A DNA stretch of 64,000 nucleotides from Macrostomum lignano. Taxonomy: Eukaryota. The notes below the pieces were generated by a model. That model was not told where the DNA came from. It saw only the letters and a program-made list of their open reading frames with translations, and made no database searches. A program made the translations under genes and the position numbers. The stretch lies in contig NIVC01001200.1 in NCBI GenBank assembly GCA_002269645.1, positions 1 through 64,000 on the forward strand. The letters are read 5' to 3'. Shown here piece by piece: positions 1 through 50,830 of this stretch. Within the stretch, counting starts at the first letter, position 1. Every line of letters begins with the position of its first letter.

Positions 1-1889
1 TACAAAGTTAATGCACAAATGTAACCAAATTAGAATATGCTCAAAGAGAAGTAAATCTAAACATTCATAGGCCTATAGCTTATTACAAATATGTCTAAGA
101 ATTATTAATCATATAATATTATAACTTATATCATTGAAAATATCAACTAGACTAGAAGGCAAAGATAAGCCCTCTGCTTGTTAATCAAAATAGGTCCTTA
201 TGAAACCCAATAAAAATAAAAATACAAAGTGTAAATAATATAACATTATATGTGTAATGAAATATGCATTTATATTTGTATTGCTAGTATTTTTTAAGAA
301 TTTATACTAATGTTAAATATTCTAGGAATGTAATATACCAACTATTTACTTACTGTAATTTTTATTATATTATTTGTTTTGAATAGTGTTTTGTATGCAA
401 ATATAAGGTAAAACCAGTTTAAACCAGTTAGGCATGCATTGTACAATTGGTCTCTCAGGTGGCTACAAATAGCTAACCTTTAGACACTTCATCATAGACA
501 TAGATGTCACACTACTTGCCGTAGACATAGACTTATACTAGAATATTACATTATTTAAGTTCACTTAGAGTGTAGTTAATATTGCAACTATTATTACTAT
601 ACAATTAGCCAATCCCAATACTAATTTTATCCAATATATAATAGTTATAGTGAGTTAGTGAGCCAGTGTGTGCTACCTAATCTAACTAGATCATTAATAT
701 TATAATATTTACAGTCAACCTATATTAACCTACACAAATATTAAACCTGATTGCCCTGGCAGCGTCTTTGTTTCAATTTCTTTTACTCAACTCCAGTATA
801 GAGAATTTGAATAGCAACCACAAGAAGTTAATATATTGCATAAATATTGTTATTTAGCTTTAGCTATTATGCAAATAAGCAGGGCACTATTGGCATGACA
901 TCATGTGGATAATATTATCAGGATTAGCATGGGGATGTAGGAATAAACACTGATATTATTCTTGCATTTGCAAGGAGCCAAGATGTTAGGCTTAGTATCT
1001 TTCATATTTGGTAATATTAATCAGCTTAAACATAATGTATAAATATTTCTACTTGAATTTGAACCCAGTGTGTGAGTATGTAGATTAGAGTACATTTTCA
1101 ATTTATTTCCTATCTTTCTTAGCTAGCACTAACCTAACACTTAATTTTTCAGCATACCAAAATATACTATTACCAAAGTGGCTATTACCTAAGTGGACTT
1201 TTACTGGGACATCCAAATCTTTTGATGAACCTGGAAAAATTGCAAACGACTATGCAATATTTAGACATGAATACTGAGCCAGAGCCACCCCCTCTTCTGC
1301 CTCACCCACACTGTCTGCCTCATTATTTTGTGGGCCACACGTTTTGCTAGGACAGTTTTTTATTTTTATTGTTTTAGCCGTAGCTTAAAATTACACAGAG
1401 TTCTGTTGAAAAAATCTGATAGGAACAAAATGGTTGCATTTATTTTGTGTTTAATAATTAGTAAGTAACAAAAAATGAAGCCTAAGGCCAAAGGAAACAT
1501 AATTTTAAATTTTGACTTGAATTCTTTCTTCTTGGAAAAATATTATTTTGCAATTTTTTGAATTAGCAGGAATTTCATTAACGATGCATAACGAATTACT
1601 TTTAAAGGCTCTTTCCTATTGGTACTCTATATTAGTGCAACATTTGTGGTTCGTATTATTCGATTTATTTAAAGTAATGAAAGATGGCAGTGTAAACAAG
1701 TATTAAGGCGCTACCGAAGACTTTGCTAAAATTATCTAGTTGGTTGAATACAATTGAAAAAGTTTTCGACGCGAAAGTAAGTGCTTGTGAACAAAAGTAT
1801 GCACTACTACCAAGATGAGCATAGTGTTAGTGGTAATTGTAATACAACAACAACAACAAAATACGCTGTCAAGATGGCAAAAGTCAGCG

Positions 1890-4716
1890 TCACAGGGCGC
1901 GCTTCATGGCTTGGGCGCGAACAAAGGCCGCGCCACCGGCAGTGTCCGGGGCGCCGGCGTCAGCCAGCAGACAGTCGACATAACGCCGAGTTCGCGCTTG
2001 ACCTCGCCGGTAGGGTGCCTGCAGCGTGAGCAGCAGCACCTCCTGCACCGGCTGTGGGCAGTACGACTCGGCGCGGATGAGATGGCCTGCGAGCTGGAGT
2101 CGCCGACGGCGCAGTAGATCACTTGGACGTGGCAGGCCAGCGCGGCGATAGAGTGCCGCGTTGGTGACTCGCTCGACGCCGATGTTGAAGGCGGCGCGCA
2201 GCAGGCCAGCGTGCGCCGCATCGACTTGCTGTTTGAGTGAGTCCGTCAGCGTCCAGGTCTCGGCGTTGTACAGCAGGACGGTCTCGATTACCGCCTGGAA
2301 CAGCGCCGCCCTCTGGCGGTCCGGTAGGGCCTCGAACTGCAGGACTCCCTCACAGAACGAAAGGCAGCCCAGGCAAGCCCGCGGCGGCGTCGCAGGTCCT
2401 CGCGAGCGTCTGGAACCAGACCGCCGAGGTAGACGAACTGCTGACATCGCGGGAGTTCGGTCGCCTGCCCGTCAGCGCCTCGGCAGAATATTGCAGCCTC
2501 GGCACGCAGAGCACAACGGTCTTCTGTGTGTTGACCACCAGGCCGACACTCGCCGCAACGGCAGCTAGCCTGTCCAGCTGCCGTTGGGCGCCCTCGACGG
2601 TCGAGGACAGCAGGGCGAGGTCGTCGGCGTAGCCAAGCACGCTGAGCCGCTTCTCCGGTTGACGTCGACCTACGCGTCGCCGCAGCAGAAAACCGTCGTC
2701 GTCGGTAGGAAGAGCAGTCCGCAGCACCCAGTCAAGCACCAGGACGAACAGGAACGGCGCCAGCGTATCTCCCTGAAGTACTCCGGAGGATGTCTCAAAG
2801 GAGTCCGATAGGCCGTCCGGTGTTGTCACAGCAGCTGTCGTATCACGGTACATCGCCATGATGGCGGAGATCAGCTGCTCGGGCACGTTGTACGCGCGGA
2901 GCACCATTGGAAGCACGGCTCTGACAACCGAGTCGAATGCCTTCTTGAAATCAATAAAGATTAGAATCAGGATCGACTGGCGAATCCGCGCCTCCTCGAT
3001 GACTCGGCGAAGAGCCAGGATCTGCGCCACTGTGCCGCGATGGGCCGGAACCCGTTCTGCTCTGGGCGCAGGTACGGATCCAGCACGGGCTGCAACCGCG
3101 AAAGCAGCATCCGGTTGAACAGCTTCGCTGCACAGGACTGAAGGCAGATGTGCCCGTGGTGCCCGGCCTAGTGGTGCCCGGCTTCTTTGGAACAGCAACG
3201 ATGTGCGCCGTGGTCCATTCGTTGGGCGCCGCCTCACCGAAGAGCACGCGGTTCATCACTCTGGCGACCTCAGCGGCCACACAGAGGATGCGCAGCGCCT
3301 CGATGGGCACCTCGTCCGGACCCAGCGCTTTCCCGCCCGGTGACTGCTGGCGAGCTTGACAACGTCGGCTGCGTTGACTGGGCCTACGCTGAAACTCTCC
3401 TCTGCCGGCAACGGCGTCTCCGGCGGCAGCGTCAGACTGTCTGGCAGCGGGGGTGGCGGCGCGTTGACGATGGCGGCGAAGAACTCGCGCAGCTCGTTCC
3501 TGCGCTCATCCGGAGTGTCACCAGCCAGGTTCAGCGGATTGCGCCGCTTTCGCCCCGTCAGAGCGTTGATGGCGGACCAGGCCACGCGCCCTCTGGCATC
3601 GGCCAGCGGCAGAGACAGCCTGAATGGCGTCATCGACAGCCGCTTGTTGGCGCTGCAGGTAGACAGCCGCCAGAGCTGCCTCTGCCTCGCGGGTTGGTCA
3701 CCTGCTCAAGCGGAGCCTCTCCAGATCTTCCCTCGCTGCCTGAATCGCAGGGTCGTCCTGCCAGACCGGCTGCCCACGTTGAGCCGGTTGCATCATCGGG
3801 ACTGCTTGCTCCGAGGCGGTTCTGACTGCAGCGCACACTTCCGCATACTCGGCACTTCCACGCTTGTCGCCCAGCGCGGTGTTAAAGGCGCTAGCAAAGC
3901 AACGCTGCGTATCGGTGGCTCTGAGCGCGCGGTAGTAGCGCCGCGGTGGCCGCTTCGGCGGACGGTAGAGCGGATCGCGAAGGTTGAGGTCGCAGATGAG
4001 GAGCCGGTGATCGGACCGCAGAGCCAGCGGCTTGATGGTGCGGCAGTTGACGGCGCGACGACGCTCACGGAAACGCACGAGCACGTGGTCGAGCTGTGCT
4101 TTTCTCCGGGTTGCGTTCCTGCCACGCGCGTTCCGTCGCCTCCGCTTGCAGCCCACGAAGGTTGCGAGACCGCTCAGTGGCTTGCGGAAGCGGGTGTGTG
4201 CCAACACCATGTCCTGCCTCTCCAGGAAGTCCTCCAGTGCCTCGGTGTTGTTGTTCCCGCGTGGCGTCACGAACAGCGACCTCTCGGACCTACGCAGGAC
4301 TGCGTTCAGGTCTCCGAGGACGACCGCTGTGTCACGCTGCGCCATCGCCTCTACCTGCACTGAGAGCTGCTCGAAAAACTCTTGAGCCTCGTCAGGGCGT
4401 GTGGCAGGGCGCGCGTACGCGCAGAACAGGCGAGCATTCCGACTGCGTAGCCGGACGTCGATCCGAAGCAACCGGGGGGACAGGGAGACGCAGCGACAGC
4501 TCTGCTGCAGCCTCGGCCCGATCAGCGCTCCAACTCCTCCACTGCCTCGCTGGTCCGCAGAAGTATAGTAGAGGGTCCACCCGGCGCCCAAGTCCTCACA
4601 ATGAAGTCCCGGGTCGGCCTTGATAGACACCTCCTGCAGCGAGATGATGTCGCCAGCACCCCTCTACGCCAAGCAGCCTTGAGAGTGCGGCAGTTCAGCG
4701 TCCCGACCCGAAGCAT
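1890..4716 (-). pseudogene. APE endonuclease + reverse transcriptase ORF of the RTE element, split by several frameshifts/deletions
   Basis: APE motifs LRVGTLNCRTL, DIISLQEV, VVLGDLNA, LDHVLV, SDHRLL. RT motifs FIDFKKAFDSV, GVLQGDTLAPFLF, LGYADDL, GLVVNTQKT. C-terminal ETVLLYNAETWTLT. These lie across ORFs 4522-4716, 3698-4630, 3256-3633, 2951-3310, 2350-3237 and 1890-2447. Confidence 0.9.
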
Positions 4717-8911: not shown

Positions 8912-9598
8912 GGCATGATCTGATTTGACGGTTGCATGATCTGATTTGATGGTTGCATGATCTGATTTGATGGTTGCATGATCTGATTTGATGGTGCATG
9001 ATCTGATTTGATGGTTGCATGATCTGATTTGATGGTTGCATGATCTGATTTGATGGTTGCATGATCTGATTTGATGGTTGCATGATCTGATTTGATGGTT
9101 GCATTATCTGATTTGATGGTTGCATGATCTGATTTGATGGTTGCATGATCTGATTTGATGGTTGCATGATCTGATTTGATGGTTGCATGATCTGAGTTGA
9201 TGGTTGCATGATCTGATTTGATGGTTGCATGATCTGATTTGATGGTTGCATGATCTGATTTGATGGTTGCATGATCTGATTTGATGGTGCATGATCTGAT
9301 TTGATGGTTGCATGATCTGATTTGACGGTTGCATGATCTGATTTGATGGTGCATGATCTGATTTGATGGTTGCATGATCTGATTTGACGGTTGCATGATC
9401 TGATTTGATGGTGCATGATCTGATTTGATGGTTGCATGATCTGATTTGATGGTGCATGATCTGATTTGACGGTTGCATGATCTGATTTGATGGCTGCATG
9501 ATCTGATTTGACGGTTGCATGGTCTAATTTGATGGTTGCATGATCTGATTTGACGGTTGCATGATCTGATTTGACGGTTGCATGATCTGATTTGATGG
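8912..9598. repeat. 21-bp minisatellite (GATGGTTGCATGATCTGATTT), ~33 copies with 20-bp variants
   Basis: Directly visible tandem repeat. Confidence 0.95.
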
Positions 9599-10422
9599 CT
9601 CATCACAAGTGATGGCATTGTGGGCGAGTCTCCAAAAGGCATTGTGTTGAGAGAGTCAGGCTGATTTTGGGGTACACACGAACTTAGACTAAGTTGGCCT
9701 TCCGACTGGTATATTTATACTTATATATTTATCTAGCTGCGACAAATCAATATCGGCAAACAGATGTACATAGAAGATGTATATATCTGCAAACCAACTA
9801 TCCAACAGGAGGTCCATGCAGCACTTCAAAAAAGCTTAGCTCGTATCAGAAGTGTTCGCAAGATGGGAATGGACTCCGATTCCAGCTATTGATTGACAAG
9901 TTTTTTTCAGCTCAATGTTATAAAATTGTGTACCTCCGCCTGCTGCCTCAGTCTCCTCTTTTTTTCTGTTTTTTTCGACAAAGTATCTCCTGCCACACGC
10001 ATGAGCAAACGCGTGACACTGTCAGTTCAACTCTAAAAAAACTGAAGGCTTCCGATCTCGCTGGTGCATTTTGCTGCGAAACCCAGCCGCCAATCAAATC
10101 TGGCGCACTTTGGCGCAGAGATTCTGTTCGAAAGGAACTTGCAGCTCTTCGTAACCTTATCCTAGTGGGTGAGCCGCTGAGCCGTTGGAGTAGGAAGACT
10201 TCGACAGATGAGCTCAGCTAAGGATTCCAGCTGCTCAGCTCTGAGTCCACGAAACCGCCAGTCTCTCCCGCGACGGCCTCTGGGCTTTGGCTGCTGTGGC
10301 GGTCCCTTCATTCAGTATGCAAATTGTTTTCTGGCTCCGGCAGGTCGCGCCAGCAGGGATATCGGATTACCGTGCAGATTAACGTGCCCTGCAGTCACTA
10401 TGCCAAGATTATAAACAACAAA

Positions 10423-11486
<1,064 letters not shown>

Positions 11487-11490
<4 letters not shown>

Positions 11491-11575
11491 AGTGAGTGTG
11501 TGCCTGTGCATACGACTGCGTATGTATCCGAGTGTGCCTGCTCAGGGAAGTCGGGCGGAATGGACAGTAATGCTT
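11487..11575 (+). mobile_element. partial SINE body related to the SINE at 62208-62573
   Basis: Shares GAGTGTGTGCCTG...GTATCC...TGCCTGCTCAGGG(A/G)AGT...GGCGGAATGG(A/G)CAGTAATGC with ~62419-62492. Confidence 0.6.
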
Positions 11576-11712
11576 ATCGATTGCAACCCATGATGCTTTT
11601 GTATTTTTTTCACGATTTTTGCAATTGTAACAACGCATAAGTTAAAGCTTGAGATCTAAAAGGTATTTTAAACTCCAATCCAAAGACTCAAATACTCAAG
11701 TTGCCATTGACG

Positions 11713-12018
11713 TCAGTCATTACTCGCACATTTCCAATAGCCAGGTATCCCGGAGCAGCGCTTTGAGCAGCAGTAAGGGGCTAAGCTATCCTTACAGCGC
11801 CTGCCTTTCTTGAGGCATTCCAGTCTGCACGCGGTTGAGCAGTCTGCATGGGCGTTTTGCATGCGATTGGTTATTAGCCGCAGGCAAGCCAAGGATATGC
11901 TAAATAAACCTAATTCGGGGCGAAACTCACCGAGAACCGCGAGCAGGGCAAGCAGAACCAGCCACAGAATATACTGTATATTCTGTGGAACCAGCAGCAC
12001 GAGTAGTTGGGTCTTCAT
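11713..12018 (-). CDS. small secreted cysteine-rich inhibitor-cystine-knot (knottin)-like peptide; probable 2 exons (12018-11931, 11843-11713)
   Basis: ATG at 12018, hydrophobic signal peptide, and an 87-nt phase-1 GTGAGT...CAG intron candidate (11930-11844). The C-terminus CLKKGRRCKDSLAPYCCSKRCSGIPGYWKC fits C-x6-C-x7-CC-x3-C-x8-C. Confidence 0.7.
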   Translation of the reverse strand: MKTQLLVLLVPQNIQYILWLVLLALLAVLGEFRPELGLFSISLACLRLITNRMQNAHADCSTACRLECLKKGRRCKDSLAPYCCSKRCSGIPGYWKCASND

Positions 12019-12604
12019 TTAGACTTTTATAGCTTCCAAAAGTTTACTTGGGGTCAACGCCTGTTTGCAGCAGCCTCTCTTAGGAGCGCAGAAGTGCAGA
12101 GTGAATCTTTTGATGTCTATGGCAAAAACCCACAGGGTTGCGCTGTACCGTGACCTTTGCCCGGTGAGCTGACAGCCGCGCCCCGTTAGTGCCATAGACG
12201 CATTAGGCGCCATCTACTGGTCAGTTGTGCGCCCTCCTTGACTTGGTCGGAGGGCACTGAATGATTTCTCCTTGCCCTCGAGGTCGAGAAGACTTTCCCG
12301 TCTTCATGGTCTAATTACTACAGTTCAAAACTGCTGTCAGTAAACAAGCTCAAAAAGTTTTTAAGCTTCATCAGGCCAGCAAGATAATGAGCTGCTCAAG
12401 ACTCCTACTAATTGCGTCTATAATTTTCTGTCTGCCTCCACCAACTTCCACTCATCTTTTTTCCTTAGACTCAGCCTGCCCCCTGCCGGTTGTTTGAGTT
12501 GGAGGGTGCTCAGCAACTGGGATGGCCAAGGAGGCTTTGAACTGGGATCTGGAGTGCCAAATCCTCATTCTTCAGACAATGCATTGTTAATTAGTTGTTT
12601 TGAA

Positions 12605-14300
12605 TGAATATTGTGAATTAGACATTGTGAATTATACATTGTGAATTATACACTGTGAATTAGACATTGTGAATGATATATTGTGAATTAGACATTGTGA
12701 ATTCGACATTGTGAATTAGACATTGTGAATGATATATTGTGAATTAGACATTGTGAATGATATATTGTGAATTAGACATTGTGAATTAGAAATTGTGAAT
12801 TAGACATTGTGAATTCGACATTGTGAATTAGATACTGTGAATTAGACATTTTGAATTAGATATTGTGAATTGGACATTGTTGATTAGACATTGTGAATTA
12901 GATATTGTGAATGAGATATTGTGAATTATATATTGTGAATTAGACATTGTGAGTTAGACATTGTTGATTAGACATTGTGAATTAGACATTGTGAATTAGA
13001 CATTGTGAATTAGAAATTGTGAATTAGACATTGTGAATTCGACATTGTGAATTAGATACTGTGAATTAGACATTGTGAATTAAACATTGTGAATTAGACA
13101 TTGTGAATGATATATTGTGAATTAGACATTGTGAATTAGACATTGTGAATTAGACATTGTGAATTAGAAATTGTGAATTAGACATTGTGAATTCGACATT
13201 GTGAATTAGATACTGTGAATTAGACATTTTGAATTAGATATTGTGAATGAGATATTGTGAATTATATATTGTGAATTAGACATTGTGAGTTAGACATTGT
13301 TGATTAGACATTGTGAATTAGACATTGTGAATTAGACATTGTGAATTAGACATTGTGAATTAGAAATTGTGAATTAGACATTGTGAATTAGACATTGTGA
13401 ATTAGATACTGTGAATTAGACATTGTGAATTAAACATTGTGAATTAGACATTGTGAATGATATATTGTGAATTAGACATTGTGAATTAGACATTGTGAAT
13501 TAGACATTGTGAATTAGAAATTGTGAATTAGACATTGTGAATTCGACATTGTGAATTAGATACTGTGAATTAGACATTGTGAATTAGATATTGTGAATGA
13601 GATATTGTGAATTATATATTGTGAATTAGACATTGTGAGTTATTAGACATTGTTGATTAGACATTGTGAATTAGACATTGTGAATTAGACATTGTGAATT
13701 AGAAATTGTGAATTAGACATTGTGAATTCGACATTGTGATATCGACATTGTGAATTAGACATTGTGAATTAGAAATTGTGAATTAGACATTGTGAATTCG
13801 ACATTGTGAATTAGATACTGTGAATTAGACATTTTGAATTAGATATTGTGAATGAGATATTGTGAATTATATATTGTGAATTAGACATTGTGAGTTAGAC
13901 ATTGTTGATTAGACATTGTGAATTAGACATTGTGAATTAGACATTGTGAATTAGAAATTGTGAATTAGACATTGTGAATTCGACATTGTGAATTAGATAC
14001 TGTGAATTAGACATTGTGAATTAGATATTGTGAATGAGATATTGTGAATTATATATTGTGAATTAGACATTGTGAGTTATTAGACATTGTTGATTAGACA
14101 TTGTGAATTAGACATTGTGAATTAGACATTGTGAATTAGAAATTGTGAATTAGACATTGTGAATTCGACATTGTGAATTCGACATTGTGAATTAGACATT
14201 GTGAATTGGACATTGTGAATTAGACATTGTGAATTAGACATTTTGAATTAGACATTTTGAATTAGACATTGTGAATTCGACATTGTGAATGAGATATTGT
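12605..14300. repeat. 14-bp minisatellite (GACATTGTGAATTA), ~120 copies with repeated variant blocks
   Basis: Directly visible tandem repeat. Confidence 0.95.
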
Positions 14301-33297: not shown

Positions 33298-33885
33298 TCA
33301 CTTGGAGAAGAGGCCCAGCAGGCCGCCCTTCTTGGCAGGCGGAGGCGCCATGATCATGGGCACCTGGTTCATGTGGGTGATGCTGATGGTGCAGGGCGCC
33401 TGAGACCAGGGCTCGCCGTCGATCTGCATGGGGAAGCGCCTCCTGGTGCGGATGACCACCTCGCTGCACTGCGCCAGCCGCTTGCCGGAGCTGCGCAGCC
33501 CCCCGGCCACCATGCCGGCGTGGACGGCGTTCTCCAGGCCGACAACTTCAATGAGCTGGTCGCCCATGTCCTGCACTGCGAACGCCAGCTCGTTGTTGCT
33601 AAGGGAAGCACTGGACAGCTCGCGGTCTCTGCTCCCGCTGGCTCCGCCGCTCGGCTTCCGCTTGCCGCCCTGCTGCCCCGACGCCGCTGCAGCCGCGGCA
33701 GCTGCCGCCGCGGCCGCCGAGCTTCGCTTTCGGTTGTTCTCCCACAGAGTGCGGCCGCCATACACGGAGTTGATGTTGAGCAGCGCCATGCCCTCCAGCG
33801 GCGTGCCCGAGCCCAGGTCCAGGGCGTAGCCGTCACAGATGATGTCCAGGCTCTCGTGCAGGTTCTTGCAGGACCCGCCCAGCAT
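33298..33885 (-). CDS. dgk: type I diacylglycerol kinase, exon 4 (accessory catalytic domain, stop)
   Basis: CAG acceptor at 33888-33886, phase 0. Motifs LEGMALLNINSVYGG, DQLIEVVGL, FPMQIDGEPWSQAPC. TGA at 33300-33298. Confidence 0.95.
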   Translation of the reverse strand: MLGGSCKNLHESLDIICDGYALDLGSGTPLEGMALLNINSVYGGRTLWENNRKRSSAAAAAAAAAAAASGQQGGKRKPSGGASGSRDRELSSASLSNNELAFAVQDMGDQLIEVVGLENAVHAGMVAGGLRSSGKRLAQCSEVVIRTRRRFPMQIDGEPWSQAPCTISITHMNQVPMIMAPPPAKKGGLLGLFSK

Positions 33886-33909
33886 CTGCGGGGATGTGGG
33901 TAGGAATTT

Positions 33910-34770
33910 TTGTGAATCACGGGGATCTTGGATTTATGTGAGTCATCGGGATTTGGGATCTACGAGTATGTGAATGACTTATAGGGATCTGGGATTCACG
34001 CAAAGCATGGGGATCTGGGATTCACACCAACCATGAGGATCTGGGATTCAAGCAAAGCATGGGGATCTGGAATTCACACCAACCATGGGGATCTGGGATT
34101 CACGCAATCCATGGGGATCTGGGATTCACGCAATCCATGGGGATCTGGGGTTCGCACCAACCATGGGGATCTGGGATTCACGGGATTCACACCAACCATG
34201 GGGATCTGGGATTCACGGGATTCACACCAACCATGGGGATCTGGGATTCACAGGATTCACACCAACCATGGGGATCTGGGATTCACGGGATTCACACCAA
34301 CCATGGGGATATGGGATTCACGGGATTCACACCAACCATGGGGATCTGGGATTCACGGGATTCACACCAACCATGGGGATCTGGGATTCACGGGATTCAC
34401 ACCAACCATGGGGATCTGGGATTCACGGGATTCACACCAACCATGGGGATCTGGGATTCACGGGATTCACACCAACCATGGGGATCTGGGATTCACGGGA
34501 TTCACACCAACCATGGGGATCTGGGATTCACGGGATTCACACCAACCATGGGGATCTGGGATTCACGGGATTTACACCAACCATGGGGATCTGTGATTCA
34601 CGGGATTCAAGACACCATGGGGATCTGGGATTCGCGGGATTCACACCAACCATGGGGATCTGGGATTCGCGGGATTCACACCAACCATGGGGATCTGGGA
34701 TTCACGGGATTCACACCAACCATGGGGATCTAAGATTCACGGGATTCAAAACAACCATGGGGATCTGGGC
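33910..34770. repeat. 35-bp minisatellite (TTCACACCAACCATGGGGATCTGGGATTCACGGGA) in DGK intron 3
   Basis: Direct. Confidence 0.93.
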
Positions 34771-35142
34771 TTCGCACCGAACTGGCGGCAAAGCCGGGGC
34801 CAACAAGGCTAAATTTCGATCCCTAAGCAACCGGCAGTCCCAGTTTCAGGACGGGATTTCGTGCCGAGGCGGCCGAGGGATTAAAAACTTTCTAAATTGG
34901 CTGGTTTCGCCAGCGAGCCCCCCCCCCAGCCCGGCAGTCCTTGTCAGCTCATAACTTTTAGATTAAATAAAGCATTGCAGCCCGAATTCCGGACAGGATC
35001 GGGCAAGAACTTTGCGGGGATAAATATCCCCTAAATATCCCCTACCTTCCTGACTGGCTTTCCTCTGTCTCTGGGGTTTCCAGCACCGGTCGAGGACTCT
35101 TCAATAAACCTGGATTGGATTCCTGAACTTGGGTTGCCTCAC

Positions 35143-36090
35143 AAACTAGAATACTCACAAACTAGAATATTCACAAACTAGAATATTCACAGAATAGAAT
35201 ATTCACAAACTAGAATATTCACAAACTAGAATACTCACAAACTAGAATATTCACAAACTAGTATATTCACAAATTAGAATATTCACAAACTAGAATATTC
35301 ACAGAATAGAATATTCACAAACTAGAATATTCACAAACTAGTATATTCACAAATTAGAATATTCACAAACTAGAATATTCACAAACTAGAACATTCACAA
35401 ACCAGAATATTCACAAACCAGAATATTCACAAACCAGAATATTCACAAACCAGAATATTCACAAACTAGAATATTCACAAACTAGAATATTCACAAACTA
35501 GAACATTCACAAACCAGAATATTCACAAACCAGAATATTCACAAACCAGAATATTCACAAACCAGAATATTCACAAACTAGAATACTCACAAACTAGAAT
35601 ATTCACAAACTAGAATACTCACAAACTAGAATATTCACAAATTAGAATATTCACAAACTAGAATATTCACAGAATAGAATATTCACAAACTAGAATATTC
35701 ACAAACTAGTATATTCACAAATTAGAATATTCACAAACTAGAATATTCACAAACTAGAACATTCACAAACCAGAATATTCACAAACCAGAATATTCACAA
35801 ACCAGAATATTCACAAACCAGAATATTCACAAACTAGAATACTCACAAACTAGAATATTCACAAACTAGAATACTCACAAACTAGAATATTCACAAACCA
35901 GAATATTCACAAACCAGAATATTCACAAACTGGAATAGTCACAAACTAGAATACTCACAAACTAGAATAGTCACAAACTAGAATATTCACAAACTAGAAT
36001 AGTCACAAACTAGAATATTCACAAACTAGAATATTCACAAACTGAATATTCACAAACTAGAATAGTCACAAACTAGAATAGTCACAAACT
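35143..36090. repeat. 16-bp minisatellite (GAATATTCACAAACTA) in DGK intron 3
   Basis: Direct. Confidence 0.95.
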
Positions 36091-36544
36091 TCTCCAACCC
36101 AGACCCCGCGTCCCCGTCCGGACCGGCAAAAAAACGCACGGAGCGAAAATGTCAGCCAAAAGTTCGCAGAAGCAGCAGCAGAAGAAGAAATCGAATAGCT
36201 CGAACTGCGACAGGGCAAGAAGCCGGAGACACCGGACCCCACCTGGGCTGCTGCAGGGGATAAAAATAGATCACACAGCAGCAGGCCTGCGGTAGATGCG
36301 GTGCTGCTATTTCTGAAGCCCCAGCCTCCGCCCACTCCGATAACTGGGGTTGGAATTCGGCCTCAGTAATAAAAGATGATAGAAAGCGCACAGGCAGATC
36401 ACAGCGGGGGGTCTCCCAGACCTGAAAGGATTCATTCTTCCATTGATGAGCAGGCAGCACTTGCTCTCTTCATAGCCACAGCCCCCACCCGCAATTCCTA
36501 TTCATAGCCCTTAATTCCTAAAGCCGGGCTAATCCGACTAGAAA

Positions 36545-36885
36545 TCCCCGAATCCCAGAGTCCCAGTCCCCGAATCCGAGAGACCCAGTCCCCGAATCCC
36601 AGAGTCCCAGTCCCCGAATCCCAGAGTCCCAGTTTCCAAATCCCAGAGTCCCAGTCCCCGAGACCCGGAGTCCCCAGTCCCCAAGTCCCCAAGTCCCAGT
36701 CCCCGAATCCCAGAGTCCCAGTCCCCGAGACCCGGAGTCCCCAGTCCCCAAGTCCCAGAGTCCCAGTCCCCGAATCCCAGAGTCCCAGTCCCCGAATCCC
36801 AGAGTCCCAGTCCCCGAATCCCAGAGTCCCAGTCCCCGAGACCCGGAGTCCCCGAGTCCCAGTCCCCGAGTCCCCGAATCCCAGC
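36545..36885. repeat. ~22-bp C-rich (sense-strand G-rich) minisatellite (CCCAGTCCCCGAATCCCAGAGT) in DGK intron 3
   Basis: Direct. Confidence 0.93.
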
Positions 36886-36897
36886 AAGCCTCCGCAC

Positions 36898-37826
36898 CTC
36901 GGTCGCGCCCATCTCCACATAGTAGGCCTTGTTCCGAAATCGCGATTTGAATTTCTCCGGGTGCTTCTCCCTCAACAGGTGCCACCGGTGCGCGATGGCC
37001 GCGTCCACCCCGATGCTGAAGTAGTTGTTGATGATGGTGGCGGGGATCTCGTCCCGGGCTGGCTCGACAGCCGCTGCCCCCGCCGGGTCCTCCGCGGCCG
37101 CCCCAGCGCCGCTGCCAGCCTCGCCAGCCTCGGCCGCGTCGCCGTGGTCCTCCGGCGCGGGCTCGGAGAAGTTGATCTTCCAGCGGTCCAGCAGCATCAC
37201 GCTGCCCTGGCTGATGCGGTGCAGAATTTTCTCCAGGCTCTCGTTCTCGTAGCCGCCGCCCCAGCGCAGGCACCGGGCCAGGTCATTCCCGGTGCCCAGG
37301 GGCAGCACGGCCACCGGCGGCCGGTTGTCGCCCCAGTCGAACTTGTCCATGGCCTCCAGCAGCCAGCCCGCCGTGCCGTCGCCGCCGCACACCAGGATGC
37401 GGAACTGCGGCAGCTCCCTGAAAAAGTTCAGCCCGATGTACGGCCCGCCGTCCTTCACCAGGTCGTACACCTGGCGCGGGTTCAGCAGGTACTGCATCTT
37501 GTGCAGAATGCGGACTCCCTGCTTGCCGCCAGACTTCGGGTTGATGAACACCAGCAGCGGCACGCAGCCGGAGGGCGGCACAATCTGGAAGCTGGAGGAC
37601 TGCTGATGAGGCGAGCAGGCCAGCTGGTCCAGCTGCGACCCGGCGGACTGGCTGTTGGGGAGGCTCTCGTTGGCTGCCGCCGCCGGCCTGCCGCGGTCCA
37701 GTACGGCGGGGAAGATCGCCGTGGGGGGCAGCACGTGCTCGCGGAGGGCGCCGAGGTCGCACTCGCTGGTCCACTGCTCCGCGCACTTGTTGTGCAGGCT
37801 GACCTTGCACCAGCGGCACTGCATGC
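36898..37826 (-). CDS. dgk: type I diacylglycerol kinase, exon 3 (end of C1b, catalytic domain)
   Basis: AG acceptor ending at 37827 (phase 1) and GT donor at 36897. Motifs [52 protein letters not shown]. Confidence 0.95.
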
Positions 37827-37832
37827 CTGCGG

Positions 37833-38580
37833 TGAGGTGGGTGCAGATCTAGCTGAGGTAGGTGCAGATCTAGCTGTGGTGGGTGCAGATCTAGCTGAGG
37901 TGGGTGCAGATCTAGCTGTGGTGGGTGCAGATCTAGCTGTGGTGGGTGCAGATCTAGCTGAGGTAGGTGCAGATCTAGCTGAGGTGGGTGCAGATCTAGC
38001 TGTGGTGGGTGCAGATCTAGCTGAGGTGGGTGCAGATCTAGCTGTGGTGGGTGCAGATCTAGCTGTGGTGGGTGCAGATCTAGCTGTGGTGGGTGCAGAT
38101 CTAGCTGTGGTGGGTGCAGATCTAGCTGTGGTGGGTGCAGATCTAGCTGAGGTGGGTGCAGATCTAGCTGTGGTGGGTGCAGATCTAGCTGAGGTAGGTG
38201 CAGATCTAGCTGAGGTGGGTGCAGATCTAGCTGAGGTGGGTGCAGATCTAGCTGAGGTGGGTGCAGATCTAGCTGAGGTGGATGAAGATCTAGCTGTGGT
38301 GGGTGCAGATCTAGCTGAGGTGGATGAAGATCTAGCTGAGGTGGGTGCAGATCTAGCTGAGGTGGATGCAGATCTAGCTTAGGTGGGTAGAGTGGGGTGC
38401 AAAGATCTAGCTGGGTGGGTAGAATGGGGTGCAAAGATCTAGCTGGGGTGGGTAGAGTGGGGTGCAAAGATCTAGCTGGGGTGGGTAGAGTGGGGTGCAA
38501 AGATCTAGCTGGGGTGGGTAGAGTGGGGTGCAAAGATCTAGCTGGGGTGGGTAGAGTGGGGTGCAAAGATCTAGCTGTGG
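37833..38580. repeat. 21-bp minisatellite (GTGGGTGCAGATCTAGCTGAG) grading into a related 33-bp unit, filling DGK intron 2
   Basis: Direct. Confidence 0.95.
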
Positions 38581-38622
38581 GTAGAGCAGTTGAGCAGACC
38601 GGGTTGCTAATCAATCTCTCAC

Positions 38623-39043
38623 CTGTGATGCCGGACTTGATGGACTTGCGGCACTTGGCGCACTTTTCCACGCAGTTGCCCTCAGTCCAGTGGTGCTGCA
38701 TGCTCTGCTGCGCCCCTGGCGCCGGCCGCTTGGACTTGGTGTAGGTGAAGATGCACGAGGCGGGGGCGCGGCTCACGCACTTGGCGTGCACGGTGTACTT
38801 GCAAAACACGCAGCCCAGGCCCTGCTTGCCCAGGCCGACCAGCTGCTTCATGCAGATGTTGCAGTGCCGGCCCTTGGCGAAGTGCTTCAGCCGCCACACG
38901 TGGCTGCCGTCGTCCTTCACGGTGGTGTCGAGGCCGAGCAGCACCAGCAGCGGGATGGTCGTCAGGCCGCCTCGCTTCCACTCGTCCAGGCTGACCGTGC
39001 CGTCAGCGTCGAAGTCCAGATCCGTCATCATGGACTTCAGAAT
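38623..39043 (-). CDS. dgk: type I diacylglycerol kinase, exon 2 (EF-hand 2, C1a, start of C1b)
   Basis: CAG acceptor 39046-39044 and GTGAGA donor at 38622. Motifs [21 protein letters not shown]...CNIC...[20 protein letters not shown]. Confidence 0.95.
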
Positions 39044-39189
39044 CTGGCCGGGTGCACACGGGTGGGATGTTAGAAGCTCGTCATAGTTGGCTGACTCAAT
39101 AAACCGAATTTGCATTCGATGCGAGAAATTCGTGCAAAAGCAGAAATTGAAGCCGACATGCTGGCGGCTGCCCGTGCCGCTTTTGCGAA

Positions 39190-39640
39190 ACAGAATGATA
39201 AGACTGTTTTCTGGTAAAACTCAAGGGTAAGAAGACGGTTTTATTAGAAACAGGACAGATTTCTAAGAAGACGGTTTCTTAGAAAGACGACGAGTTTCTC
39301 GGAAAAAAGACGGGTATCTTCGAAAGAAGACAGTTTTCTTAGAAAGAAGACCGTTTTATTAGAAACAGGACGGTGTTCTAAGAAAGAAGACGGTTTCTTA
39401 GAAAGAAGACGAGTTTCTTAGAAAGAATACGGGTTTCTTAGAAAGAAGACGAGTTTCTTAGAAAGAAGGCAGTTTTTTTAGAAAGAAGACGAAAGAAGAC
39501 GGATTAGTTAGAACCAGGAATGGTTTCTTAAAATAAAAACGGATTTCTTCGAAAAAATGCTCTTCTAAGAATAAGACGGTTTCTAGAAAAAAATAGGACT
39601 GGTTTCTTAAGAGAACTAGATTTAGGGTTAGACTTTAAGG
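39190..39640. repeat. degenerate ~19-20-bp repeat (AGAAAGAAGACGGTTTCTT) in DGK intron 1
   Basis: Direct, degenerate. Confidence 0.8.
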
Positions 39641-40254
39641 AAGACGCTTTTTGTTAAAAAAAAGCCGAGTTTCTAAAATACGGGTTTCGAGAGGAAAATG
39701 CAAGGGAGGTACTAGCGGGGTCCTGAGAATGCGGTAAGGGTAATGACGGGTTTCTAAGAATGAAGTTAAGATAATGACGGGTTTTATGAAGAGTCGTAAA
39801 AGTTCAAGGACGAAATGGACCGGCCTGACAGCGGCAAGCAGTGATGAAGGACGCGGGAATTTAGCATTAGCAGACACTGCCGCAAGCAAATTACAGGCTG
39901 TATATAAAACTGCCAATGATGTTGCTAACACCAATCAGCGATTGAGATTGACGGTGACCCATGCCGTGCTGATAGCGCTTGCACTGCTCAGCCACTGGCA
40001 GAGACAGATCAGGGAGAGGATGAGCAGAATTAGAATGACAGCCTTTAAAAATTATTTTTTAAATTCAAGTTGGATAAAATTGAGCTCATCAGTGACTGTT
40101 TAAAAGCATAAAAACGGTCAACGAAACACAGAGTACTTGCCGACTATCTGATGCTGAGGTGCAGCTGAAAGATTTGTACGCACAGCTGTGTCTGAATATC
40201 TGAATTGCAGTGCAAATGCCTCTTTTGCACAGCTGAGCTCTGCGATGTGCCAGC

Positions 40255-41842
40255 AAAGATCTGGGAGGGCGGCCCAGCAACTCACACTCTGGGAGGCTGG
40301 CCCAGCAACTGGGGATCTGGGAGGGCGGCCCAGAAACTCAAGATCTGGGAGGCTGGCCCAGCAACTAACACTCTGGGAGGCTGGCCCAGCAACTGAGGAT
40401 CTGGGAGGCTGGCCCAGCAACTGAGGATCTGGGAGGGCGGCCCAGCAACTGAGGATCTGGGAGGCTGGCCCAGCAACTAACACTCTGGGAGGCTGGCCCA
40501 GCAACTGAGGATCTGGGAGGCTGGCCCAGCAACTGAGGATCAGGGAGGCTGGCACAGCAACTGAGGATCAGGGAGGCTGGCCCAGTTGAACTGAGGATCT
40601 GGGAGGCTGGCATAGCAACTGAGGATCTGGGAGGCTGGAACAGCAACTGTGGATCTGGGAGGCTGGTATAGAAACTGAGGATCTGGGAGGGCGGCCCAGC
40701 AACTGAGGATCAGGGAGGCTGGCACAGCATCTGAGCATTTGGGAGGGCGGCCCAGCAACTGAGGATCTGGGAGGCTGGCCCAGAAACTGAGGATCAGGGA
40801 GGCTGGCCCAGCAACTGAGGATCTGGGAGGGCGGCCCAGCAACTGAGGATCTGGGAGGCTGGCCCAGCAACTAACACTCTGGGAGGCTGGCCCAGCAACT
40901 GAGGATCTGGGAGGCTGGCCCAGCAACTGAGGATCAGGGAGGCTGGCACAGCAACTGAGGATCAGGGAGGCTGGCCCAGTTGAACTGAGGATCTGGGAGG
41001 CTGGCATAGCAACTGAGGATCTGGGAGGCTGGAACAGCAACTGTGGATCTGGGAGGCTGGTATAGAAACTGAGGATCTGGGAGGCTGGCACAGCATCTGA
41101 GCATTTGGGAGGGCGGCCCAGCAACTGAGGATCTGGGAGGCTGGCCCAGCAACTGAGGATCTGGGAGGGCGGCCCAGCAACTGAGGATCTGGGAGGCTGG
41201 CCCAGCAACTCAAGATCTGGGAGGGCGGCCCAGCAACTCAAGATCAGGGAGGGCGGCTCAGCAACTCAAGATCAAGGAGGGCGGCTCAGCAACTCAAGAT
41301 CAGGGAGGCTGGCCCAGTTGAACTGAGGATCTGGGAGGCTGGCATAGCAACTGAGGATCTGGGAGGCTGGAACAGCAACTGTGGATCTGGGAGGCTGGTA
41401 TAGAAACTTAGGATCTGGGAGGGCGGCCCAGCAACTGAGGATCAGGGAGGCTGGCACAGCATCTGAGCATTTGGGAGGGCGGCCCAGCAACTGAGGATCT
41501 GGGAGGGCGGCCCAGCAACTGAGGATCAGGGAGGCTGGCACAGCATCTGAGCATTTGGGAGGGCGGCCCAGCAACTGAGGATCTGGGAGGCTGGCCCAGA
41601 AACTGAGGATCTGGGAGGCTGGCCCAGCAACTCAAGATCTGGGAGGTTGGCACAGCAACTGTGGATCTGGGAGGCTGGCCCAGCAACTGAGGATCTGGGA
41701 GGCTGGCACAGCAACTGTGGATCTGGGAGGCTGGCCCAGCAACTGAGGATCTGGGAGGCTGGCACAGCAACTGTGGATCTGGGAGGCTGGCCCAGCAACT
41801 GAGGATCTGGGAGGCTGGCATAGCAACTGAGGATCTGGGAGG
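40255..41842. repeat. 28-bp minisatellite (CAGCAACTGAGGATCTGGGAGGCTGGCC), ~56 copies, in DGK intron 1
   Basis: Direct. Confidence 0.95.
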
Positions 41843-41886
41843 AAGTCAGCAGGATCCCAAATAAAACTCAGAAACCGCGCACTCAC

Positions 41887-42270
41887 CGGCAGCAGCTCTG
41901 TGGTGTCCCAGCCGAGGTACTCAGTGACCTTCATCATCTGGCTGATGATGGCGTCGACCTCGCTGGTATCCAGGTAGCCGTTGCCGTCGGTGTCGAACAG
42001 GCGGAAGACGAACTCGAGCTTCTCCTCGGGCGCGCCGCTCTCCAGCTCGCTGAGGCAGCGGACGAGCTCCTTGTCGACGCCTTCGAGGCTGCTGGCTGCG
42101 CCAAACGATGAAGAGGCGGGGCCGCCCGATGAGGGCGAGCTGAGGCCGCCGTCGTCCTTGGACTTGGAGCCGGAGGCACCGCCGTGGCGCCGGCGGGTCT
42201 GCGGCGTGTCGTCCGCCGAGCCGCCGGAGGCCAGCGGCAGCACCGGGAAGGAGCGGCTCCGTGAGTCCAT
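41887..42270 (-). CDS. dgk: type I diacylglycerol kinase, exon 1 (EF-hand 1)
   Basis: ATG at 42270; motif [24 protein letters not shown]; GTGAGT donor at 41886. Exons of 384+421+929+588 = 2322 nt give 773 aa plus stop. Further upstream exons are not excluded. Confidence 0.9.
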
Positions 42271-45200
42271 CACGGCGCGCTGACCGACTTGCTTGCTGCT
42301 GGTCCCGAGTTCGAACCCGAGACAGTTGATTCGACTGGCTGGCTGGCTGTGGGGGACGTCGCTGATGAAGGCCGGTGCGGGCCGGCTGCGCCGGTCTGTC
42401 CTGGCCGCGCCTCTTCCTCTATTTATGCAAACGGGGCGGGCACAGCGGCGGGCGGGCCGGCGGGCATCAATAAAACAAAAATTGCGCGAGCTTCAACCGC
42501 GAGGCTGCTGCGGGGCGGCCCTGCCCAGTTTTCCACTCGGGCCGGCAGGCTGCGGGCAGATGAGCGCGGGAGAGACGGGGCTGCTGCGGGCCAGGGAAAT
42601 CGCTGGGCTCGGCTGCTTAGAAGGGCGGGAGAAGGCCGGAGCAGTCAAGATCGGGGCAGGGGAGAGAAGCAGGGGGGAGCGCGCGGAGGAAGAGGATCGC
42701 GAGGTGGAAACAGAATCCGAATGGGCGCGGGCGGCTCAGGGAATGGGACAGGGGGGAAGAGGGGTGAAGCCGCAGGGAAATGGGCAGCAGGAAGGCGCTG
42801 GGGCAGCCATTCGCCAGAACTCAAAATGGCGGGCCCTCCCTCTTCCCCTTGGCTCTCCTCTGGCCCGCCCTGGCGCGGTGAGGCGCCGCCAAGAAGTTCA
42901 GCGGTGGCTGCTGGAGTCCCTCCCAGCTTCTCTCGGAAGACTCGAAAGTTCGCCTCATCACTAACAGGGAGAGGCAGGGACTCGAAGGGCGGTAATCAGG
43001 CAACTGATTAATAGGCTGGATGAATGCTGGATTTGGGCGCGGGATCTACTACGGATTATTTAGGCCTGATGAGATTAAGATTGAGAAAACAGCGAGTCTG
43101 GTTGGAAAGTGAAATTGGATTTAGGAATGCATAAAAGAACAATAGTTTTACTAGCAAATCCAAATGCTGAACTTTTTGGGTGAACTCTTTCTGATATGAA
43201 TCAATAAAGGCATGATGAATTTAATCTATATTTGTTTTTAAGCAATTATAATTTTTTAAAAAGTAGCTAAATCTTTTAATTACAGGTTCATAAAAATCCA
43301 TAAACTTCAAAGAATAAATTATATAAACCTATAAATTGTTCCTAATATTTGAGGATAGGAATGGATACAGAAAAAATCTATAAGTATAAGGAGGTGCACA
43401 TAAATATAAAACTATTATTAAAATACATTGCAATTAAACCAAATCTTCTATCTGGGATACACAGAACTATGATAATGATATATAGACTCCCTCCCTAAAA
43501 CTGCCCCTAAGTAATGATTAAATAACATTTAATTTGTTAGACATAAGAAGAAACTATTAGCATTTATGACTTAAAAACCAAACTAAAATTAGTGTCTATA
43601 AGATTTTTGGTGTTACCATCTTAAGTAAAATAGATCTATAAAGGGTTTATTCTATATATTTTATTTGAATAATACAATAACAAAAGTAAAACATTAAAAT
43701 ACTAATACTATAGTAAAAATAATATTCAAATTTTAAATCTAGCTTTGATAGAAAGAAGACAATGACATTACTCAAAGCTATTCTGCTATATCAAAAACAT
43801 AAAACACATATAGATTGTTTTATCCAAGCATAGAAAACTTAAGAGATTTAGTTATATTTGGATAATACTTAGTACAGCCACTGCCAGCATTAGAAAAATG
43901 TAAAAGATATGCTAGATAGAATCTGGAGTAATTAGCGTTCATAAAAATTGAATGATTGAATGACATAAATAAAAAAGGCATTTTTTAAAATTACCAGCTA
44001 AAAATAACTAACACGCCGCTTTGGAGGGCCAATTGTTTCCAACAAAATACACCTTATTTTGCGAGTTAAATTTAGTCATTGTAAATATACACAGACTTTA
44101 ACAAATATAAATATTTGAGAGCTACTACACATAAGTAAATTTACAAATGGTTGTCATTAAAACTAAAATAAAAAACTTCTGCTGATTTTATTAAGTGATT
44201 TTTAGCTTTACAATGTAAAATTTTAAATATATTCATAATGTTTCGCGGTATCATGGTTACAGCACGTCGTCGTATGGAGCTCGGCTTGCTCAATGCTGTG
44301 CCTCTATCAAGCAGTGAGTTGACTTGAGTTTGAAAGAATATACAACATAATAATGTGACTAACGTTTTCTGCAATTCCGGTTAGGCTCAAAGCAAAAGTG
44401 AAGATCAAACAATTTTTTAGCAGGGTGTAAATAAGTGTAACTAATAACTATATTGGCAGCAGACCAGGCGTGCTTCTCCTTAAGCATAGACGCAAGAAAA
44501 TCAAAGAAGAACCAAGTGCATTTACAGAGCCGCCCCCTCTGCAACCCATTGGGCAGCTTGGGGCCTTGGGTCTGTCTTTACTCTCTAAAATCCCCCTAAG
44601 TAATTATGACTGTCTTATAAAGGCTAAATGTCTTATTATCTAATTAGTATTATATGTATTCTTTTGGAACATTTTTGCAACTTACCCTTGGTCAACCAAC
44701 CATAATTTATAGTGGCTAGATTGGTTTGGTTGGCCAGAAGTTGTGCATGTATAGTAAAAAACTATTATATTTTAATTATTTTTATTTTACTTTTTCTTTT
44801 TAGAAAAGCTAAATACAATTTTTTAATTTAGGTTTCTGAGGATTAGAATCTAGGAGGGTTGCATCAGAGAGACTAGGCCCCCCTAATGCTTTTAAGGGCT
44901 ATCTAATGTTTTGGTAAAGTAATGTTTTTGCAAATAGTGTTCTAGCAAATTTATTTTTCAGGAACTTTTTTTATCTCAATGACACAATGCTATATATTAT
45001 AATAATTTTCTTACAATAAACTTCTAAACTCATAATAATATAATTTTCTATTACCCAGTGGCAGTAAAGACTACTTTGTTGAAATCACAACTTTATTTTT
45101 CTGGTTTTTAAAAATGCAGTTTTAGGCTTATTGAATATGACCCGTTTTCCAACTCCAACTCCAACTCCAACTCTAAGTCCAAAAAAGACTAACAAAAAAA

Positions 45201-49625: not shown

Positions 49626-49889
49626 ATACCTCTTGTCAAAATTGATGATACATGTTGTGTGCTTCTCTACTTCAGTTCACAGAAAGTGCCTCCACTGGGT
49701 TGCCAATGGTTCTAAAAGTGTCTGCAATTCGATTGCATCCTTCAAAATGTGGGACCAAAAGCGGCAATCTATAATTTCAATGACGCACAAGTGCCTCTGT
49801 TCACTGTGCAAGGTTTTGTGAGAAACAGTTGCTTGGTAATATTCAACAGTACAGTTTTCAATTGGCTGGCTACCTGCTTGGTCTTGGTT

Positions 49890-50552: not shown

Positions 50553-50830
50553 TAATTCTGACGTATCTGAACAACTAAATATTATGCCAGACCCTACCTG
50601 CTTTTCCCTGGCCGCTCTGATGACAGAGTCCTCTGGGTCTTGTGTTGGCCTAGAAGGGGCTGCTTCTGCTGCAGCTGATGCCGACGTACTCGGTTTGGCA
50701 AACGATTGGAAGCGAACTGTTCTCTGTGGAAATATTATGAGTGACTTAATATAAATTCCTTAAATACTTTAATACTTTTTTACTTTAATATTTAATACTT
50801 TAAATACTTTTAAATTCAAGTCTTACTTAC

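Follow-up and report, generated by a model that had tools for sequence, protein, structure and literature searches.

A putative secreted eight-cysteine peptide, probably knottin-like, encoded by an unannotated two-exon gene copy of the Mlig004682 family in Macrostomum lignano

Organisation of the Locus

The window, i.e., the complete stretch of 64,000 nt of Macrostomum lignano DNA that was analysed, contains a 1.1-kb island of unique sequence (11498-12609), within which a small gene lies on the minus strand. The first-pass annotation had described this gene as isolated between satellites, with a signal peptide followed by a canonical intron and then by a cationic, cysteine-rich part; all of these elements were found at 12018-11713 on the minus strand, and an (AGTT)n array and a 14-mer array were located on either side. 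The following features make up the island and its borders:

10423..11497, no strand: (AGTT)n microsatellite of ~269 copies, forming the 3' flank of the gene island
11713..11843, minus strand: exon 2 (131 nt including TGA), complete 8-Cys peptide, with the stop codon TGA at 11713-11715
11844..11930, minus strand: intron (87 nt), GTGAGT...CTAAT...TGCAG, phase 1, CTAAT being a branch-like motif
11931..12018, minus strand: exon 1 (88 nt), ATG and signal peptide, ending at the first base of the split codon (phase 1)
12019..12303, minus strand: upstream block, 83-84% identical to the Mlig004682 loci, presumed promoter and 5' UTR
12115..12199, no strand: inverted repeat in the upstream block, arms at 12115-12129 and 12185-12199, 55-nt loop
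12610..14305, no strand: satellite of the 14-mer ATTGTGAATTAGAC, ~121 copies, forming the 5' flank of the gene island

The open reading frame (ORF) at 11713..12018 (minus strand) runs continuously from ATG to TGA over 101 codons. Since the intron keeps the frame and contains no stop codon, the unspliced ORF is likewise open (101 aa), and the splice is not deducible from the frame alone. The spliced product comprises 72 aa. Its exon 1 portion is nearly all hydrophobic and reads MKTQLLVLLV[PQNIQYILWLV]LLALLAVL, where the bracketed residues are an insertion, and its C-terminal part is DCSTACRLECLKKGRRCKDSLAPYCCSKRCSGIPGYWKCASND.

In the upstream block, the 10-nt core of the inverted repeat, GTCTATGGCA/TGCCATAGAC, was found to be identical in the paralogue. 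The motif TATAAAAG is present 10-17 nt upstream of the ATG of the window copy and is missing from the paralogues; given this distance and this absence, it is probably incidental and was rejected as a promoter. An upstream ORF at 12019-12213 was rejected as coding sequence because paralogue indels in this region break its frame. Scanning the whole window against Rfam yielded no matches.

Relationship to the Mlig004682 Family

The closest relatives of the window peptide are three M. lignano gene products annotated as "hypothetical protein", BOX15_Mlig004682g1, g2 and g3 (PAA46843.1, PAA64343.1 and PAA85542.1; UniProt A0A267DC28 and A0A267GJV9). They are represented here by the 69-aa g2 product (P0001) and by a second sequence of the P0001 cluster covering g1 and g3 (P0002); the three corresponding genomic loci (L001-L003) were retrieved and compared. 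BLASTP of the window peptide against a Mlig004682 paralogue gave an E-value of 7e-8. Homologues with conserved cysteine spacing had been named in the first-pass annotation as a check on the gene, and such a relative was recovered by tblastn of the mature window peptide against L001, the locus of P0001, with an E-value of 5e-14 and all eight cysteines kept. Alignment of the window peptide with the paralogues revealed 28 invariant columns, the eight cysteines among them, and the elements common to the window peptide and P0001/P0002 comprise the start MKTQLLVLL, the signal-peptide end LLAVLG (the Gly of which is an Asp codon in the window copy), KKG, CKDS, YCCSKRCSG and GYWK.

Beyond the signal start and end, the motifs and the cysteines, g1-g3 have the two-exon layout, the phase-1 intron and ~300 bp of promoter in common with the window copy. 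The intron in L001-L003 is a 104-nt GT..AG intron of phase 1 that interrupts the same codon as in the window copy, and at all four loci the intron begins after ...GTTCTCG and ends before xCTGCTCAA. A length of 104 nt is not a multiple of three, which means that removal of the paralogue intron is required; retention of the intron, with the 101-aa ORF as the true product, was rejected for this reason.

For the Mlig_3_7 gene models, transcripts assembled along the genome with StringTie/TACO were used together with a de novo transcriptome and with data on trans-splicing and poly(A) sites, followed by TransDecoder; the models do not stem from ab initio prediction (PMC5730564). Because the Mlig004682 models were thus built from RNA-seq and transcriptome data (PMC5730564), the family is transcribed and spliced. 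Judged from these comparisons of sequence, the small two-exon gene of the window is real and not a chance ORF.

A diacylglycerol kinase exon at 36538-37824 (minus strand) showed long runs of 100% identity to the M. lignano protein A0A1I8FL28 (UniProt), including 82 residues through a non-conserved linker, and the identity breaks only at frameshifted stretches of the older A0A1I8FL28 gene model. This identity to M. lignano implies paralogy, not orthology, between the peptide gene and Mlig004682, and the window copy is evidently an unannotated member of this family.

By exact look-up, both the spliced and the unspliced product of the window copy were found to be absent from a collection of 15 billion proteins. 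The suggestion that gene finders would miss a gene in this setting is weakened by the three paralogous copies, which were annotated from RNA-seq. The absence of the window product fits either low or no expression, or a locus that is missing from the annotated assembly. Where DNA is rich in satellites, two-exon genes of very small size may go unannotated; what is new here is the unannotated window copy, while the family was already known in the form of deposited hypothetical proteins.

Searches for further relatives led back to the same family. Queried with the ORF as well as with a profile of two sequences, the word index returned the P0001 cluster only, and P0001 was likewise the sole match when 1.84 billion representative proteins were scanned in full by HMMER with a profile of the mature peptide. 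Scanning metagenome contigs gave 389 pattern matches, of which 0 were confirmed. A tblastn search of the window and of the M. lignano loci L001-L003 detected a single copy in each and no further copies. With profile searches returning no relatives elsewhere, the Mlig004682 family is lineage-restricted.

Divergence and Constraint between the Copies

DNA homology between the window and the Mlig004682 loci is limited to 11707-12303, corresponding to the coding region and ~285 bp upstream of it, with the homology to L001 ending at 12303. Outside the gene, no synteny with the Mlig004682 loci was found. A shared LINE was considered as a sign of synteny and rejected, as it belongs to a dispersed LINE family and differs in orientation. 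The window copy would have arisen from an old duplication of the ~300 bp promoter together with the coding region, at ~15% DNA divergence.

Identity of the window copy to L001/L002 was as follows:

upstream 300 bp: 83-84%
intron: 81-86%
exon 2: 85.5%

Overall, the window copy and the Mlig004682 paralogues differ by about 15-16% at the DNA level and have different C-termini; the window copy is without the 9-residue loop between the last two cysteines and without one residue between cysteines 2 and 3. Exon 1, when the insertion is disregarded, shows 3 differences from L002 and 4 from L001 over 55 nt and is thus better conserved than the rest of the gene (~15%), a distribution that recalls the conotoxin pattern. 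For the mature part, a dN/dS of 0.43 was calculated (Nei-Gojobori; dS 0.41, dN 0.17). Within the peptide region, two internal indels are clear; their lengths of 3 and 27 nt are multiples of three, as is that of the 33-nt footprint described below.

Exon 2 (85.5%) is no better conserved than the intron and the upstream region (81-86%), and purifying selection on it is therefore weak. A conserved signal next to a mature part that varies on a fixed cysteine scaffold is typical of effector peptides, and the copies would conform to this pattern, with the reservation that the numbers are small and the constraint on exon 2 is weak.

A Transposon-Like Footprint in the Signal Peptide

The insertion in exon 1 has the architecture of an excision footprint:

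11955..11995, no strand: excision-type footprint in exon 1, consisting of an 8-bp duplication, a 25-nt palindromic remnant and the second copy of the 8-bp duplication

The target duplication GAACCAGC (plus strand) is present as exact 8-bp direct copies at 11955-11962 and 11988-11995. Between them, at 11963-11987, lies the 25-nt palindromic remnant CACAGAATATAC-T-GTATATTCTGTG, a perfect inverted repeat (12-1-12; 13/13). The net insertion of 33 nt lengthens the hydrophobic core of the signal peptide by 11 in-frame codons (PQNIQYILWLV), some of them polar (P, Q, N, Q); in the paralogues, this site is empty. The same architecture, with an 8-bp duplication and a CACAG...CTGTG remnant, was found directly after the stop codon in L001-L003 (10327-10356), and a further footprint occurs at position 8959 of L002/L003, where the site is empty in L001.

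By our own estimate, a triple coincidence of this kind is expected at a frequency of ~1e-4 per 64 kb, which is why we regard these structures as marks left by the excision of a cut-and-paste transposon that duplicates 8 bp of its target. Excision footprints of P-element/hAT type likewise show an 8-bp direct duplication, between the copies of which the two element ends survive as a short palindrome. The CACAG terminus differs from classic hAT and Drosophila P ends, and a full-length element with CACAG...CTGTG ends was found neither in the window nor in the M. lignano loci sequences compared. A cut-and-paste transposon would have hit the window copy at a later stage, and its excision would leave the 33 in-frame bases in the signal peptide. 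Recurrent footprints with 8-bp duplications would point to a cut-and-paste transposon family that is active now or was so recently and has edited a coding exon and the 3' UTR of this gene family.

The codon divided by the intron is GAC (Asp) in the window copy and GGC (Gly) in all paralogues, and the replaced Gly is position -1 of the likely cleavage site between AVLG and C. The first-pass annotation contained neither this change nor the footprint. In the paralogues, a textbook 19-aa signal peptide ends in AVLG. The hydropathy profile of the window copy revealed a 14-residue hydrophobic stretch (YILWLVLLALLAVL) ahead of the cleavage region, and secretion via a signal peptide of 29-30 aa is plausible. 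Should this prove true, the in-frame footprint remodels the N-terminus of a secreted effector and does not destroy it.

Footprint and Gly-to-Asp exchange taken together, the copy may be decaying and may not be functional. In the strict form of this explanation, the window copy is a pseudogene of recent origin, a relic that is silent or decaying, is disabled in secretion and has an open ORF merely for want of time. The position of the footprint in the hydrophobic core and the altered cleavage-site codon agree with such a relic, as does the absence of its product from the protein collection, given that the RNA-seq-based annotation did keep the 69-aa paralogues. Exon 2, moreover, diverges about as fast as intron and promoter. 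With half of the ~16% divergence assigned to this lineage, the chance of retaining all eight cysteines was estimated by us to be ~0.15, and neutrality is therefore not rejected. Against decay stand the intact ORF, the perfect splice sites and the restriction of the footprint and the two clear indels to multiples of three; the remaining hydrophobic stretch, with which the longer signal peptide is plausible, and a dN/dS below 1 also speak for a functional copy, and the locus may simply be missing from the older assembly. In view of both sets of observations, we consider a relic somewhat unlikely, although it is the strongest of the competing explanations.

The Mature Peptide and Its Fold

The predicted mature peptide has a mass of 4.7 kDa and contains 9 Lys and Arg versus 3-4 Asp and Glu residues, resulting in a net charge of +5/+6 and a pI of 8.9-9.1. 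Its cysteine spacing is C-3-C-3-C-6-C-7-CC-3-C-8-C. The six-cysteine core, in C-C-CC-C-C order, reads C-6-C-7-CC-3-C-8-C in the window peptide and C-6-C-7-CC-3-C-18-C in the paralogue, and the N-terminal C-x3-C-x3/4-C is conserved between the two. The two extra N-terminal cysteines may form a fourth disulfide or may be removed, partly or wholly, with the signal peptide; cleavage after CSxA and after CSxAC are both compatible with the -3/-1 rule.

In Pfam, the sole match of the window peptide was Toxin_7 (PF05980, spider toxins) at 13.7-16.6 bits and an E-value of 0.009-0.075, which does not reach the gathering threshold of 27 bits. This alignment spans the six core cysteines end to end (profile positions 1-31 of 34). 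The paralogue P0001 gave no match to Toxin_7, and conotoxin or calcin families were not found in Pfam scans up to E = 10. The sole credible sequence match in the PDB (177,635 distinct sequences) was 1DKC (PAFP-S), with an E-value of 0.0049 for the single sequence and of 0.029 for the family profile. The alignment with 1DKC covers 27 cysteine-rich residues and is of borderline significance; 9 of ~22 non-cysteine positions are identical, located around the CC doublet. At E <= 10, sequence searches of the PDB yielded no spider, cone-snail or scorpion chain, calcins included. The likeness to conotoxins and scorpion calcins emphasised in the first-pass annotation was not borne out by the searches.

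Structure prediction was performed with AlphaFold2 from an alignment of two sequences only. The 42-residue peptide was modelled at a pLDDT of 53.5 with a helix at residues 3-12 and a hairpin, and a Foldseek search with this model returned no structural neighbour. The six-cysteine core was modelled at a pLDDT of 62.3 with short strands (23-25 and 28-30) and a C-terminal hairpin. Among 350,542 chains, Foldseek retrieved two neighbours only for the core model, both of them inhibitor cystine knot (ICK) toxins: U4-agatoxin-Ao1a (PDB 2N6N; TM 0.57, rmsd 2.4 Å) and the scorpion lambda-KTx toxin lambda-MeuKTx-1 (PDB 8F2F; TM 0.53), with E-values of 3.3 and 7.3, respectively, neither of which is significant. 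Structure prediction had been suggested as a check of the ICK fold; the models obtained are of low confidence, and it is the core, not the full mature peptide, that finds ICK toxins as neighbours.

The ICK reading itself stands as far as the C-6-C-7-CC-3-C-8-C core fits the framework, while the Toxin_7 match below cut-off and the Foldseek E-values withhold formal support. All of these signals fall short of significance, yet all point, weakly, towards knottins. Overall, we hold a knottin-like framework of the family to be moderately probable.

A different arrangement would be a non-knottin fold with four disulfides, e.g., a beta-hairpin to which an N-terminal CxxxC helix is fastened, in which case the ICK-like spacing would be coincidental. 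Conservation of all eight cysteines between the paralogues, including those of the N-terminal C-x3-C-x3/4-C, is in line with such a fold, as are the helix and hairpin of the 42-residue model and the fact that no knottin family was matched at threshold. That helix model, however, has a pLDDT of only 53.5 and is without structural neighbours; the core model and both sequence searches indicate knottins only, and the CxC motif of the cysteine-stabilised alpha-beta fold is lacking. This makes a non-knottin fold unlikely.

Comparison with Known Knottin-Type Peptides

Structure 1DKC represents PAFP-S, a knottin-type antifungal peptide of pokeweed seeds. The plant knottins PAFP-S and Mj-AMP have loop lengths near-equal to those of the window peptide (C-6-C-7/8-CC-3-C) and are small, basic and secreted, as is predicted for the flatworm peptides; the latter possess two N-terminal cysteines beyond those of the plant peptides. 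The stretch of similarity between plant and flatworm sequences is too short for homology to be told apart from convergence.

With the spider Toxin_7 family and the scorpion ICK toxins, the window peptide shares the six-cysteine framework, but it has no propeptide. Conotoxins of the O-superfamily (framework VI/VII) and calcins have the generic C-C-CC-C-C pattern in common with it; unlike in conotoxins, no pro-region is situated between signal and mature peptide. Membership of the window peptide in a named knottin family is not established by these comparisons.

Putative Function

The explanation we favour, and consider on balance the probable one, is that the gene is a genuine, unannotated two-exon paralogue of Mlig004682 encoding a secreted, cationic peptide with eight cysteines, of knottin type and most likely with a role in defence. 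Exon 1 would provide the ER signal peptide and exon 2 the whole secreted product. The peptide would be exported from secretory cells, fold into a compact, disulfide-locked knot and act extracellularly; its basic face would bind microbial surfaces, by analogy with knottin-type antimicrobial peptides of plants and insects.

M. lignano is an interstitial worm that grazes on, and is cultured on, diatoms. Defence (antimicrobial or antifungal) is favoured as the putative role because of the strong positive charge of the peptide, an antifungal knottin as its nearest sequence neighbour and the diatom-grazing biology of the animal; taken by itself, this assignment is tentative, even if no other role appears more likely. 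The family belongs to a very common class, the small secreted cysteine-rich peptides.

In the literature, Mlig004682 was not mentioned in the full texts or in the supplements of the M. lignano studies searched, including PMC7336406, and no link between Macrostomum and knottins was found. A preprint on planarian toxins made no mention of knottins or Macrostomum. Expression, localisation or activity data for any family member were not found in the literature searched.

Alternatively, the peptide could belong to the reproductive secretions (of the prostate or seminal fluid) or be specific to some other gland, and evolve fast under sexual selection. Rapid evolution is reported for genes connected with reproduction in Macrostomum (PMC7336406), and the lineage restriction of the family, with no relatives in the 1.84 billion representative proteins or the metagenome contigs, would match such a history, as would the variable mature region beside a better-conserved signal exon. 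Speaking against it, Mlig004682 is absent from the supplements of PMC7336406 and of the other M. lignano studies searched, no expression evidence was found, and dN/dS is below 1. We consider a reproductive role unlikely.

M. lignano is not known to possess a venom apparatus, and a role of the peptide in venom is unlikely in a diatom grazer. In a broader sense, the peptide could be a neurotoxin-like modulator of ion channels, i.e., a knottin serving as venom or as deterrent of predators. The sole Pfam match is indeed to a spider-toxin family, the only Foldseek neighbours are the spider agatoxin and the scorpion lambda-KTx, and the six-cysteine framework is equal; yet these matches are all non-significant, the PDB and Pfam searches gave neither a spider, cone-snail or scorpion chain (E <= 10) nor a conotoxin family (E = 10), and the knottin scaffold is not tied to any particular function. 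In a diatom-fed animal without a known venom apparatus, a channel toxin is improbable. Sequence alone gives no indication of a toxin, considering the weak fold assignment and a copy that is perhaps degenerating.

The defence reading can be extended to the proposal that macrostomid flatworms own an undescribed knottin-type antimicrobial family whose nearest relative is PAFP-S, by convergence or through a very old scaffold, and in which the footprint is tolerated in the signal peptide. We put this forward as speculation with a low chance of being correct in full. If active, the peptides would constitute the first described knottin-like effector family from a macrostomid flatworm. For M. lignano, a laboratory model, methods of transgenesis, RNAi and in situ hybridisation exist, and these make a direct functional test of the orphan cysteine-rich peptide feasible.

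Cysteine Richness of Reading Frames in the Window

A chance ORF within repeat-rich DNA, for which the existence of several equally cysteine-rich ORFs in the window might be cited, can for practical purposes be dismissed, as an annotated and transcribed paralogue has the same intron position and every cysteine (tblastn as above). Cysteine density alone would not have been convincing, since the window contains 213 ATG-initiated ORFs with a length of 40 aa or more, of which 5 reach 8 cysteines within 45 aa, compared with 0.1 in shuffled sequence. These cysteine-rich ORFs of the window stem from satellites and GC-rich off-frames.

Transposon Excision-Type Footprints in the Peptide Gene and Its Paralogues

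Comparison of the window with L001-L003, the genomic loci of the M. lignano paralogues Mlig004682 g1-g3, revealed three independent excision-type transposon footprints, each consisting of a short palindromic CACAG...CTGTG remnant between exact 8-bp target duplications.

Footprint 1: window 11955-11995, signal-peptide exon of the window gene
Footprint 2: L001, L002 and L003 10327-10356, 3' UTR of the paralogues
Footprint 3: L002 and L003 about 8959-8998, with the same site empty in L001

Together, the footprints point to a family of cut-and-paste elements that generates 8-bp duplications and is active now or was so recently; a full-length copy of the element leaving these footprints was not found in the sequences examined.

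Divergence Within the Peptide Gene

With the footprint disregarded, the signal-peptide exon (11931-12018) showed 3-4 differences in 55 nt relative to the paralogues, whereas the mature-peptide exon (11713-11843), the intron and the promoter had each diverged by ~15%. The contrast between signal and mature parts comes from a small sample (P about 0.02 by our own estimate) and recalls toxin and antimicrobial-peptide gene families, where a conserved signal is likewise combined with a variable mature part.

Within the upstream block shared with the Mlig004682 loci, an inverted repeat was located.

Inverted repeat: window 12115-12199; L001 about 9811-9905

Its 10-nt core arms, GTCTATGGCA and TGCCATAGAC, are the same in the window and L001 paralogues, and the 55-60-nt loop has diverged between them. 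Candidate explanations for the repeat are a regulatory hairpin, a structure of the 5' UTR and the remnant of a MITE.

Mobile Elements and Dispersed Repeats

Further mobile or repeated sequences were recognised as follows.

1869-4630, minus strand: fragment of a non-LTR retrotransposon that includes endonuclease and reverse-transcriptase domains
60113-60682, minus strand: fragment of a mariner/Tc1-like DDE transposase, matching Pfam Transposase_1 and DDE_3
11498-11579 and 62236-62558, and L002 6513-6844: dispersed repeat

The non-LTR fragment is 73-81% similar to copies lying directly 3' of the Mlig004682 genes in L001-L003; the relative orientation of these copies differs, and synteny of the window with the three loci was therefore rejected. 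The dispersed repeat at 11498-11579 adjoins the (AGTT)n array beside the window gene; further copies, with 82-85% identity, lie at 62.2-62.6 kb and within the paralogue loci. The repeat probably belongs to an unclassified mobile element.

Tandem Arrays and Unmatched Reading Frames

Tandem arrays are unusually dense between 8913 and 42000, comprising >25 distinct mini- and microsatellites, and many spurious long ORFs run through the arrays of the window.

51924-53229: 224-bp satellite, 5.9 copies, 98% identity

This agrees with what has been published on the M. lignano genome, where simple and tandem repeats account for ~15% (PMC5730564). On the minus strand at 48100-51706, several ORFs of 150-296 aa, the longest acidic-rich, gave no Pfam match and may stem from an unclassified element or from a gene restricted to this lineage.

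Diacylglycerol Kinase Gene

A type I diacylglycerol kinase gene occupies about 33298-42273 on the minus strand.

41632-42273, minus strand: EF-hand exon
within ORF 37283-39115, minus strand: C1-domain region
36538-37824, minus strand: catalytic exon
about 33298-33885, minus strand: accessory-domain exon

Its introns are crowded with minisatellites whose repeat units measure 8 to 42 nt. Long stretches of the gene are identical to M. lignano A0A1I8FL28, the deposited model of which looks frameshifted.
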